From Ruditapes philippinarum (taxonomy: Eukaryota), in NCBI RefSeq assembly GCF_026571515.1, contig NW_026862991.1:1-64000 (forward strand): 64,000 bases of DNA. Reading direction: 5' to 3'. A program made the translations under genes and the position numbers. Below, piece after piece: positions 9,301-63,909 of the stretch. A model generated the notes under the pieces. That model was not told where the DNA came from. It ran no database searches and saw nothing but the letters and a program-made list of their open reading frames with translations. How positions within the stretch are numbered: position 1 is the stretch's first letter; each line of letters opens with the position of its first letter.

Positions 9301-12300
9301 ACATAAAGTATTTACTCATCAGAACAACTGCAGATGTATTATAGGACATGTACATTAGATACAGCTTAACACATGATTTTGTTTATACCTGGTATTTGAT
9401 AGCATCATTAATAAATTGCTGTATATTTTCTTCCGATGTTCCTTGGCTGATTAAAATTGTCACTGCTTCTTTTATGTCCATACCAAGTCTGTCCGATGAA
9501 ATAAATATGAAACACATATATTCCTTCTGGATGAAAATAATTTGGTGTAGCTTAATGTTATCGGATAAATTACGTTGAGAAATAATGTTATTATAGGTCT
9601 ATTTTACATCAAATTCATTAGCTTTACATATTTGAAATTCCCTGTAATGAATGTAATACTCACGTAACGACATCTTGAACAGCCTGACGTCGTCGTCGTC
9701 TCTTGCGAGACGAACATTTTAATGATTGTGACATTCGAAAATTAAGTTGACAATCATTCGAATTCTGAGTGCTTGTGCATACTATCACGGTTACTGATAC
9801 ATCGTAACTTGTTGATGCAGTATTAGTTACATTCATATCAATGAAGATCGCATCAGCTATAGCCTCGTGTATAGGTCCTGTGCAAATATGATATATACAT
9901 ATTGTATCACAGTTAAAGATTAAAACAATTTGTTTCCCCCTTGAGTAAACACCCCACGTGTCATTTATATTTCAAAACAATTATAATAAGTAAACTTGTT
10001 ATATCGATAATAAAAGTAATAAGATATTAATGTTTTAGATAAAGTAAACACCTACTGCTAAGTTCAGAAACTGGTCTATTCCATTTCTTGTTTTCGAGTC
10101 CATATTGGAACTTGCTATTTTCACAATCACGATTAAATTCTAGCATTACATTTCGTTTGCCCTCACTGAAATGAAATTCCGTACAACACTGAATTCCTGA
10201 GCAATCTGGGGACCAAGCACAACTGTTCTGGAGTTCGTCTGGTAATGTATCACATGCTGGAAGAAACATTGCATACTCTTTGCTTACAAAATCTTTAAAG
10301 CGTGACTGGTCCAACTGTATAAGCTACATTAAAGGCAAATCATACCCAATACGGTTAAATTTTTACTTCTTTAAAAAAGGAGCGAACATGAATATTACAA
10401 CATTTTAATAATGGTTTAAAAGCATGTTTAATGCTTCTTACATGAAGAAAAGAGCACTTTATGTGAAATTGTTTTTCATAAATGCAAAAAGTATAAACAA
10501 GTAGTTTTTTCACTTCATTCAAAATACTAAATTACTGTAACTTAACTAATTACCAAATAGCTTCAGAACAAAACATGGATCAGGTAATTAGCCAATGAGT
10601 ATCATTTTGAACACTATGAAAATACATCAAAAATAAAAAAAATTGAATACTAAAACTGAAAGAATTTCTGGGACATAATGGGTCTTTAAAAGGGAATAAC
10701 TCGATGATTATTCCTCTTAATCGTAAATAAACACGAGATTTGGCATACTGTCATGATAACACATGCACAACGGATAGCCTATTATCAGGCTCATAAGTAA
10801 CCTGATCGATGAATTCATATTTTCATAACTATCATCTCACATTAAAACTTGTTGTTCATCAAATGACATACTCCATTTTTGAACATATGTGGATATTTTA
10901 TTAACTTGATACTACGATAACCGTTTAAATGGCAGGCATATTAGATACAATAGGCGTCAAAAACGATATAAACTTGATCTTTTTCACTCTTAATTTAACA
11001 TATTATTCATTGAATTTCATAAAAGTGATAAACGATTGGTCATGCATACCACTTGCAGTTGCGGTTATGTTTTCAGTTGTGCAGATAGGCTGCCTCCAAA
11101 AGTCATGCGTTATTCCTGTAAGATAATGTTGTAGTTTTAAATAGTGTGTAGATTGTTACAAAATTTTCGTCACAGTGACTTTAAAATGTAAAACATTTAG
11201 AACTTTATCATTTTAATTTATTTGACTAAATTATCAATCTTTAGATTTGTTTTTCTGACAACAATCATTCTAGGAATTTTGCTATTAATGCATTATACCG
11301 TATGGTTCACCAGTCGTTGCTTTGATAAAATTATGTGGCATCACACTCAAGTCTGTGTCAAAAATAGAACGTGTGAAATACAGATTTACATGTTAACTGA
11401 TACATTTTATCAAAAGAAGAATTTCTGCACAGTCATCCTTTACATGTCTAGAGACATGAAGTCAAAAAGATTCATTGAAGTATTTGAAAATGCATTTAAT
11501 TTATATGAAGAAATTAACAAGAGGGCTTTGGTAATATTTTTCAGTAGTTCTTTTTCTGTTTTATTTTTACTTTGATTTCGTAATATCCGTATGCATACGA
11601 CAAACCAAAATGAAAGAGAAACTAATTTTTCTTCAGTAGTCTAACTCTTAATAATAGGAGTGTGATATATAATGTTTACAGAGAAATGAACTTCATAATT
11701 ATGCAGGATGGAAAATAAAATGGCCAGGAATACTGAACTGATGTAGAGGCTTTTCACTAATTGACAGGGTTCTGTACATAAATTTATAAGTATATGTAAA
11801 AGTACTCATACTTTTTTTTTAAATTCTAAGCAACTAATGAATAATAAGGAAGTGTTTTCAAAGTACTAACAAAATTTTTGGTAATTTGGTAAGAAAAGGC
11901 ACCAGGAAGTGTCACAAACAGGTTTTTGCTAATATCCATTGGTTTATATCCCTTTAGAAATACTTTAGAAATAACTTACATCAAAAGTAACAACAAAGAA
12001 CAATTTTTCCCCAAAATAAAGGCCCAACTATACGCATTGTAAGTGACAATCATTCTATGGAAATTATACCAAGTCAATAATAACCTGTGCCTTATGATCA
12101 GTACTTTCAGAAAAAAGCGGTTAGAACAAGTAACATAAAGTGTATGTTAAAGGCAACAACTTAAATATGAAACTCAAGAGTGTTATGCCTATAACTTCTC
12201 AATAAGAATAACTTATAATAAGCTCAAGATAATGGTATTTATACAAAAGTGTAATTATTTTCCATGTGAAAAAGGGGAATATTTTTAGAAATACTGATCA

Positions 12301-63909: not shown

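Follow-up and report, generated by a model that had tools for sequence, protein, structure and literature searches.

Tandem arrays of disulfide-rich domains, such as the cbEGF/TB arrays of fibrillin and the ZP-N repeats of abalone VERL, form extracellular rods and scaffolds. Here, a repeat gene transcribed from the minus strand of a 64,000-nucleotide stretch of AT-rich bivalve DNA (GC content ∼31%) was examined; the stretch, referred to below as the window, comprises bases 1–64000 of contig C11478. A preliminary description of the window had proposed that this gene encodes a giant extracellular protein made of ∼17–18 tandem copies of an unnamed ten-cysteine module of ∼195 amino acids (aa), specified by exons that recur in the order A-B-C-D. 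The reading favoured here, which is considered probable though by no means assured, is that the window encodes the N-terminal repeat half of a giant secreted bivalve protein, built from an unnamed ten-cysteine module whose parts fold into C–A beads, and serving as a stalk or scaffold.

Open stretches of all six frames were translated and then compared all-against-all with BLASTP, which revealed three exon families, all on the minus strand, designated A (14 members), B (13 members) and C (14 members). A exons encode ∼54 aa with three cysteines, B exons ∼54 aa with one cysteine, and C exons ∼83 aa with six cysteines, including a CC pair, giving a module of ∼195 residues with ten conserved cysteines. 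Alignments of the families reproduced the consensus strings of the preliminary description, these being F.v.DL.....Y.v.L.l.vC.ES...C......L....LP...C for A, (D)FSL..W ... DLG...YL...C ... GW for B, and CP....LP....C.L...C....CC ... D.C...L.v.IEK ... (F/W)G......L.G..R for C. Hidden Markov models (HMMs) of the three families recovered every copy with E values between 1e-11 and 1e-34, and found nothing comparable on the plus strand or elsewhere in the window. Read from high to low coordinates, the exon order is strictly A-B-C. Splice phases are conserved also, with acceptor phase 2 and donor phase 1 for A exons, 1 and 1 for B exons, and 1 and 2 for C exons, so that the length added by each unit is divisible by three. 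AG/GT sites at the conserved phase are present at 13 of 14 A exons, 12 of 13 B exons (the exception being the truncated B exon of module 2, which is without a clear acceptor) and most C exons. The proposed D exon is real, being a 43-nt micro-exon (2 + 39 + 2 nt) that encodes the last 13 residues of C; it stands separately behind five C exons that end in (F/W)G, a sixth D piece adjoins an assembly gap, and C and D are fused in six modules.

With the predicted gene LOC132750448 of Ruditapes philippinarum used as a ruler, 17 module positions and one terminal A exon can be counted in the window (Table 1), 11 of the modules being complete and five damaged. The copy number given in the preliminary description thus holds for positions and not for complete modules in this copy of the gene. 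Exactly ten cysteines are present in 9 of the 11 complete modules, and the number of N-glycosylation sequons per module varies from 0 to 6. Outside the damaged positions, ∼40 exons are open with their splice sites kept.

The window is collinear with LOC132750448 (P0173, 6854 aa) from residue 6 of the latter, at window position 59129, to residue 3651, at position 112, with alignment blocks that break at the predicted exon borders and identities of 42–84% per exon. The window gene is the counterpart of LOC132750448, from which it differs in being without intact modules 6–9 and in having at least two extra modules upstream of the start of the LOC132750448 model. The window HMMs tile independent gene models from six bivalve species and amphioxus contiguously as A-B-C with a period of ∼197 residues, which confirms the order in which the exons were joined; the same segment order was found by HMM tiling in the window and in at least 40 database proteins, and an iterated whole-module profile detected 11–17 full-length modules per independent gene model. 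Modules joined with X at split codons were then used for calculation of identities and for a maximum-likelihood tree of whole modules. In the tree, ten window modules pair one-to-one with the LOC132750448 modules at the same position, with Shimodaira–Hasegawa-like approximate likelihood ratio test (SH-aLRT) values of 97–100, deeper branches being unresolved. Paralogous modules within the window share 21–37% identity (mean 28.8%), as opposed to 55.5% for positional orthologues. Since orthologous modules pair one-to-one and are so much more similar than paralogous ones, the sequence comparison indicates that the common ancestor of the compared species already possessed the array with each of its modules, and that no homogenisation has taken place since. 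Conserved phases, the module tree and low paralogue identity also bear out the earlier view that the copies are strongly divergent and stem from old duplications in which the exon frames were maintained.

As had been suspected, the gene runs off both edges of the window. The contig continues to base 78210, where it ends still inside the array, and at least four further modules lie in the remaining 14 kb between the window edge and the contig end. At the other edge the contig start coincides with the window start, and LOC132750448 runs on for another ∼3200 residues past this point. The window array is only the N-terminal half of a protein of 6–7 thousand residues that belongs to a wider family.

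The non-repeat exons that follow the array (9114 to 112) are better conserved than the modules in comparisons with LOC132750448, Sinanodonta and amphioxus, with identities of up to 84%, and beyond the window the bivalve and amphioxus tails share ∼40% identity over ∼1800 residues. After the array, this tail is laid out as a helical region, long beta-hairpins, a PAN domain and fn3-like repeats. The array itself closes with C (10054–10254), A (9708–9872) and the polybasic motif RKRRRRR, and a second polybasic motif, RRGKR (3302–3316), stands at the start of exon 3113–3301. The segment between the two motifs (RKRRRRR at 9687–9707) is up to 83–84% identical to LOC132750448. A model of the post-array region of a Mya homologue has a mean predicted local distance difference test score (pLDDT) of 64, rising to 80–90 in the segment between the two motifs, and displays 20-residue beta-hairpins, whose best fold matches are to pore-state MACPF/gasdermin-type hairpins (Z 8.8–5.7, root-mean-square deviation (rmsd) 8–11 Å); these are regarded as a lead only. 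The family defined by the tail comprises proteins of 3–7 thousand residues in cnidarians, gastropods, bivalves, echinoderms, a hemichordate and amphioxus, which variously carry Vitellogenin_N, Peptidase_M23, SAP, PAN, fn3, phage-J-like Ig and Big_9 domains.

Damage to the array is concentrated between 42.4 and 32.1 kb, where intact exons are mixed with stop-bearing remnants at four positions. Three A remnants contain in-frame stops (41645–41818, 36160–36246 and 33911–34132), and three further remnants, two of B and one of C, can be recognised only as DNA, with 74–81% identity to a second copy of the gene on contig C2615. Still intact within the damaged block are the A exon at 39233–39391, with AG missing at the expected phase, half a C exon at 34870–35007, and the B exon at 33022–33183. 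Outside the block, the C exon of module 2 shares 79% nucleotide identity, with 19 gap positions, with its intact C2615 counterpart, and module 2 forms the long branch in the tree. The copy on C2615 (bases 405–50718) has all 15 LOC132750448-type modules intact and a tail that reaches LOC132750448 residue 4230. Nucleotide identity between the exons of the two copies is 79–99%. For module exons the synonymous divergence (dS) is 0.27 and the ratio of nonsynonymous to synonymous divergence (dN/dS) is 0.19, and for tail exons the respective values are 0.49 and 0.13. The two copies look like paralogues rather than alleles, and the still-intact exons of both appear to be under purifying selection. The single run of N in the window falls in the same damaged block. 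Both of its flanks are collinear with C2615, in the same order and orientation and a short distance apart, and a D-like peptide, SWDRFYLNGVYKL, which is the D piece of the half C exon, adjoins the gap on its 3' side, the acceptor being expected to fall within the N run. Collinearity and the adjoining peptide support the order and orientation, but not the reading frame, across the gap.

The most serious alternative is that the window copy is a decaying duplicate, whether a pseudogene or a partial pseudogene, and that C2615 holds the functional gene. The stops in the three A remnants, the missing B and C exons at positions 8–11, the cysteine-poor C exon of module 2 and the presence of all the damaged exons in intact form on C2615 would be explained in this way, and the assembly gap lies in the same stretch. 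This is a real possibility, albeit one that seems somewhat less than probable, because the remaining ∼40 exons are open, keep their splice sites and show the low dN/dS against C2615, and because decay limited to one block could feasibly reflect a local assembly problem. If expressed, the window copy must skip five decayed modules; joining the D donor of module 7 (phase 2) to the A acceptor of module 12 (phase 2) would keep the reading frame. Thirteen sequencing runs guessed to be RNA contain 5–10% of the words of the stretch, which is suggestive at most.

The range of the module was examined with a profile of 13 C exons, which was searched against 1.84 billion cluster representatives and matched 766 proteins at E ≤ 1e-3 and 30 at E ≤ 1e-30. 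The best matches are unnamed predictions from Potamilus, Sinanodonta, three Mytilus species (including M. trossulus), Mya and amphioxus, and further carriers in Ruditapes, a brittle star and a hemichordate were found in a later look-up. Across these matches the module is widespread among bivalves and occurs also in deuterostome invertebrates. The bivalve relatives, namely LOC132750448, Sinanodonta woodiana KAL3862601.1, Potamilus streckersoni KAK3609658.1, Mytilus californianus XP_052081234.1 and Mya arenaria WAR05123–05126, have the same module in A-B-C order and, like the window gene, a terminal C-A that leads into a polybasic site and the conserved tail; all are unnamed predictions without described function. 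Branchiostoma floridae LOC118406510 (7446 aa), B. belcheri KAI8518956.1 and a protein of Amphiura filiformis (7338 aa) contain 11–14 full-length modules, again followed by the conserved tail. Some of these amphioxus and brittle-star giants have Vitellogenin_N, Peptidase_M23 and SAP domains in front, and the bivalve HMM fails to recognise their B parts, which have diverged too far.

Another set of amphioxus and hemichordate relatives (P0163–P0167 and P0161, ∼5000 aa) has one C or one C+A unit in place of the 11–17 modules of the others; Vitellogenin_N is present in four of these six proteins and Peptidase_M23 in three. The occurrence of single units in these proteins suggests a single-copy domain as the origin of the array. 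Within the genome under study, at least 150 C-type exons (from 277 candidates) are distributed over nine contigs, indicating that the family is expanded. Further long C-type arrays lie on C8107 (666–734 kb), C13205 (186–281 kb), C6126 (141–216 kb), C1652, C190, C12140 and C14620, and the genome, judged from these arrays, holds several such giant genes.

For structure prediction, a two-module prediction from Mytilus galloprovincialis (P0033, 387 aa) was folded with AlphaFold (AF2), using an alignment of database proteins and window exons. The resultant model is confident, with a mean pLDDT of 90 and a predicted template modelling score (pTM) of 0.79, and shows A as three long strands, B as two short helices and C as six strands. 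Neighbouring modules are likewise placed with confidence in a fixed arrangement to each other. Foldseek comparison of the model with the PDB returned nothing at E ≤ 1e-3. The best VIA structural alignments have Z values of 5.5–6.0, none exceeding Z 6, and the only match above Z 5 is the N-terminal domain of FAIM (FAIM-NTD; PDB 3mx7), of which 88 of 90 residues align to model residues 141–245 at Z 5.5, a range that corresponds to C of module 1 plus A of module 2. The match recurs on a second, independent model, at residues 53–154 and Z 6.0, again in a C+A segment. The likeness extends to almost the whole 90-residue sandwich (87–88 residues, rmsd 3.5–3.6 Å); with 6–10% identity and Z in the range of common arrangements (the guide value being Z 8), no homology is claimed.

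This alignment range has parallels in the arrays themselves, whose first piece is of C type and whose last is of A type in eight proteins, and in the single-copy relatives in the hemichordate and amphioxus, which consist of C alone or of C then A. On these grounds the folded bead is probably formed, in the model, by C of one module and A of the next, C(n)+A(n+1), with B as a linker. The A-B-C exon unit would then be the same repeat as the bead in another register. The A-B-C-D module of the preliminary description accordingly stands as the unit of exon duplication, and probably not as the unit of structure. Its further suggestion of a long rod agrees with the confident two-module model and goes no further than a surmise.

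The favoured reading can now be set out as a mechanism. A duplication unit A-B-C (with D), of three or four exons, builds the array. In the protein, each C, with six strands, would combine with the next A, with three long strands, into one disulfide-stapled beta-sandwich bead, B would be a connector of two helices attached through its one cysteine, and the chain would be a semi-rigid string of 15–20 beads. Since the array ends in C-A and a polybasic site, it is likely to be cleaved away from the C-terminal part or to hinge on it; a furin-type protease could release the array from that better-conserved part during secretion or, alternatively, leave a hinge to it. The array would then constitute an extracellular stalk or scaffold stapled by disulfides, in which each module would have an individual, position-specific role instead of being an interchangeable or hypervariable binder. 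The context is a secretory one, with an even number of conserved cysteines, N-glycosylation sequons, a PAN domain and polybasic sites.

Several points weigh against this reading. Stops and lost exons occur in five modules of the window copy, and a full-length product may fail. The N-terminus of the gene, together with any signal peptide, lies beyond the end of C11478. The FAIM Z values of 5.5–6.0 lie in the range shared by common arrangements, and the modelled bead composition is founded on alignment ranges and array ends and not on contacts or disulfide geometry.

A different function would be that of a multivalent binder of lipids, glycans or microbial surfaces, with an immune or carrier role; the preliminary description had offered immune recognition, a shell or mucus matrix and lipid carriage, all of which are conjectural. 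A binding function would sit well with the paralogues in bivalves, amphioxus and brittle star that have Vitellogenin_N, and in some cases Peptidase_M23, upstream of the same modules, with the beta-rich nature of the module and its weak likeness to the lipid-binding folds of FABP and the TamB beta-taco (Z 3.7), and with the expansion of the family noted above. It is nevertheless thought unlikely. The lipid-fold matches are far below the stated noise level of the tool, and Vitellogenin_N (PF01347) is found in paralogues and in relatives from other phyla and is not demonstrable for the window gene, whose 5' end lies beyond C11478. Moreover, one-to-one module orthology, the lack of homogenisation and the dN/dS of 0.19 argue, at the sequence level, against a fast-evolving or hypervariable recognition array. 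A broader proposal, advanced here as speculation and doubtful as a whole, is that the C–A bead and B linker represent a new extracellular fold family, amplified from a single-copy domain to 11–17 positionally fixed modules that serve as a furin-released stalk or belt. The domain would have originated in an ancient lipid-transfer-related giant (Vitellogenin_N/M23/SAP ... PAN/fn3-like) found from cnidarians to amphioxus, with amplification in bivalves, brittle star and cephalochordates, each module having its own conserved partner.

Attempts to match the module to a named family were negative. Pfam searches with ten single exons gave no family at E ≤ 10, and those with whole multi-module homologues (up to 14 modules) gave none at E ≤ 0.01, chance-level rows alone being returned on seven proteins. 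The precomputed Pfam lists of module-rich giants contain flanking domains only, none of which covers the module, and the Pfam models for EGF, TSP1, Sushi/CCP, SRCR, VWC, kringle, Ig and ZP had no module match in the Pfam scans. Sequence searches of the PDB with the profile and with the two-module protein found no match, and no paper on this giant protein was found in the literature. It is concluded that the module is unnamed in the domain libraries reached here and is without a solved relative, in keeping with the preliminary description, which had not recognised it as EGF, TSP1, CCP, SRCR, VWC, kringle or Ig.

A further alternative is that the module belongs, as a highly diverged member, to an established family, either DUF4773 (PF15998) or a FAIM-like sandwich. 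In a language-model atlas, DUF4773 clusters were the nearest named neighbours of both the C exon and the C+A segment, with scores of 0.76 and 0.80, and FAIM-NTD was the top structural match of the C+A bead in two models. However, atlas scores under 0.9 count as leads only under the calibration of the tool, and DUF4773 proteins differ from the module in being arthropod proteins of ∼190–215 aa, as listed in the atlas. Indeed, assignment to DUF4773 was rejected, since its HMM (27-bit cut-off) matches no module exon in the genome and none of ∼45 modules at E ≤ 10; the sole match in the genome, on contig C3475, is a locus unrelated to the module and broken. FAIM is a cytosolic protein, its identity to the model is 6–10% and Z stays below 8. 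Membership of either family is regarded as quite improbable.

Finally, the notion that the repeats are open frames in a transposon or satellite array and not a gene, for which introns full of 150–180-bp satellites and one element bounded by inverted repeats might be invoked, can be dismissed, since the satellites are separate from the exons, splicing is phase-conserved, the modules have one-to-one orthologues and purifying selection is apparent.

The intronic sequences have features of their own. Satellites with periods of 148–180 bp lie in introns at 4655–5525, 6812–7794, 20329–21311, 45052–45647, 54451–55855 and 55940–56667, the A-B intron of module 3 containing units of ∼162 bp. Related units recur in several introns in both orientations, those at 20.3 and 45.1 kb being inverted with respect to each other and those at 4.7 and 54.5 kb direct. 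The A-B intron of module 13 contains a GC-rich (∼48%) insertion (27970–29314) bounded by ∼19-bp inverted repeats, aaggcccggtcacacagcc / ggctgtgtgaccgggcctt, with a minus-strand open frame of 251 aa at 27978–28733. The insertion has no Pfam or Rfam match and looks like the remnant of a DNA transposon.

Table 1. Features of the repeat gene in the window. Exon coordinates of modules are given as whole codons, each exon running 1–2 nt further; Rp numbers denote LOC132750448 modules.
Feature	Coordinates	Strand	Evidence and remarks
Module 1, complete, 10 Cys	62783..63908: A 63747-63908, B 63214-63375, C (+D fused) 62783-63031	-	HMM E 3e-28, 2e-24, 1e-32; AG/GT
Module 2, degenerate	58448..62251: A 62090-62251 intact, B 58998-59102 truncated, C 58448-58651	-	C without four of six Cys
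Module 3 (Rp01, LOC132750448 module 1)	52458..57004: A 56843-57004, B 52957-53124, C 52458-52703	-	SH-aLRT 100
Module 4 (Rp02)	50204..52080: A 51913-52080, B 51446-51607, C 50774-50977, D 50204-50246	-	HMM, splice sites, tree
Module 5 (Rp03)	46151..47474: A 47313-47474, B 46629-46787, C (+D) 46151-46405	-	HMM, splice sites, tree
Module 6 (Rp04)	43770..45941: A 45780-45941, B 44352-44513, C (+D) 43770-44018	-	HMM, splice sites, tree
Module 7 (Rp05)	42386..43559: A 43398-43559, B 42972-43121, C 42648-42854, D 42386-42428	-	HMM, splice sites, tree
Position 8 (Rp06), decayed	40496..41903: A remnant 41645-41818 (in-frame stop, lost cysteines), C remnant 40496-40709	-	C 74% nt identity to C2615
Position 9 (Rp07)	37984..39391: A 39233-39391 open, B remnant 37984-38169, no C found	-	A 83% aa identity to C2615
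Position 10 (Rp08)	34453..36246: A remnant 36160-36246 (stop), B remnant 35679-35869, C 3' half 34870-35007, D-like 34453-34494	-	C half 93% aa identity to C2615
Assembly gap, 137 N	34495..34631		In or at C-D intron of position 10
Position 11 (Rp09)	33022..34132: A remnant 33911-34132, B 33022-33183 intact, no C before next A	-	Stop 34043-34045, second A Cys lost
Module 12 (Rp10), 8 Cys	30171..32090: A 31929-32090, B 31341-31478, C 30721-30927, D 30171-30213	-	HMM, splice sites, tree
Module 13 (Rp11)	25219..29684: A 29523-29684, B 26589-26759, C (+D) 25219-25467	-	HMM, splice sites, tree
Module 14 (Rp12)	21511..24709: A 24551-24709, B 23726-23875, C 22986-23183, D 21511-21553	-	HMM, splice sites, tree
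Module 15 (Rp13)	16682..18771: A 18610-18771, B 18040-18198, C 17082-17297, D 16682-16724	-	HMM, splice sites, tree
Module 16 (Rp14), 9 Cys	14352..16402: A 16247-16402, B 15126-15272, C 14352-14621	-	HMM, splice sites, tree; B/C intron position seems shifted
Module 17 (Rp15)	10054..13283: A 13113-13283, short C 10054-10254, no B	-	HMM; LOC132750448 counterpart also without B
Terminal A-type exon piece, three Cys, closes array	9708..9872	-	Corresponds to LOC132750448 residues 2976-3030
Polybasic RKRRRRR, candidate furin-type site directly after last A	9687..9707	-	Motif in sequence
Non-repeat continuation exons	8935-9114, 8024-8311, 6079-6195, 4040-4264, 3572-3787, 3113-3301, 522-812	-	Collinear with LOC132750448 3074-3651, Sinanodonta, amphioxus
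PAN/apple domain exon of the non-repeat continuation, last before contig start	112-312, also given as 112-378	-	PAN_1 E 1.2e-6

Giant secreted repeat proteins of molluscs are badly annotated, and their domains are often missed. The present analysis describes the exon structure, the likely bead and the taxonomic distribution of a domain with neither a Pfam name nor a solved relative, which occurs in hundreds of predicted proteins (the 766 representatives above) and makes up half of a protein of 6–7 thousand residues common to bivalves and amphioxus. Naming the module would improve the annotation of bivalve, echinoderm and amphioxus genomes, and would provide a handle on an uncharacterised giant family that is linked to the lipid-transfer-protein superfamily.

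As an extracellular tandem domain rich in disulfides, the module is of a familiar kind, though undescribed, and introduces no new principle. It has no sequence or Pfam relation to the repeats of fibrillin or VERL. By analogy, the window array would nevertheless resemble both in principle, in that many similar disulfide-stabilised beads, encoded by exon-phase-compatible units, are strung along one secreted chain. The modules of VERL are presumably homogenised, whereas those of the window array are instead individually conserved.

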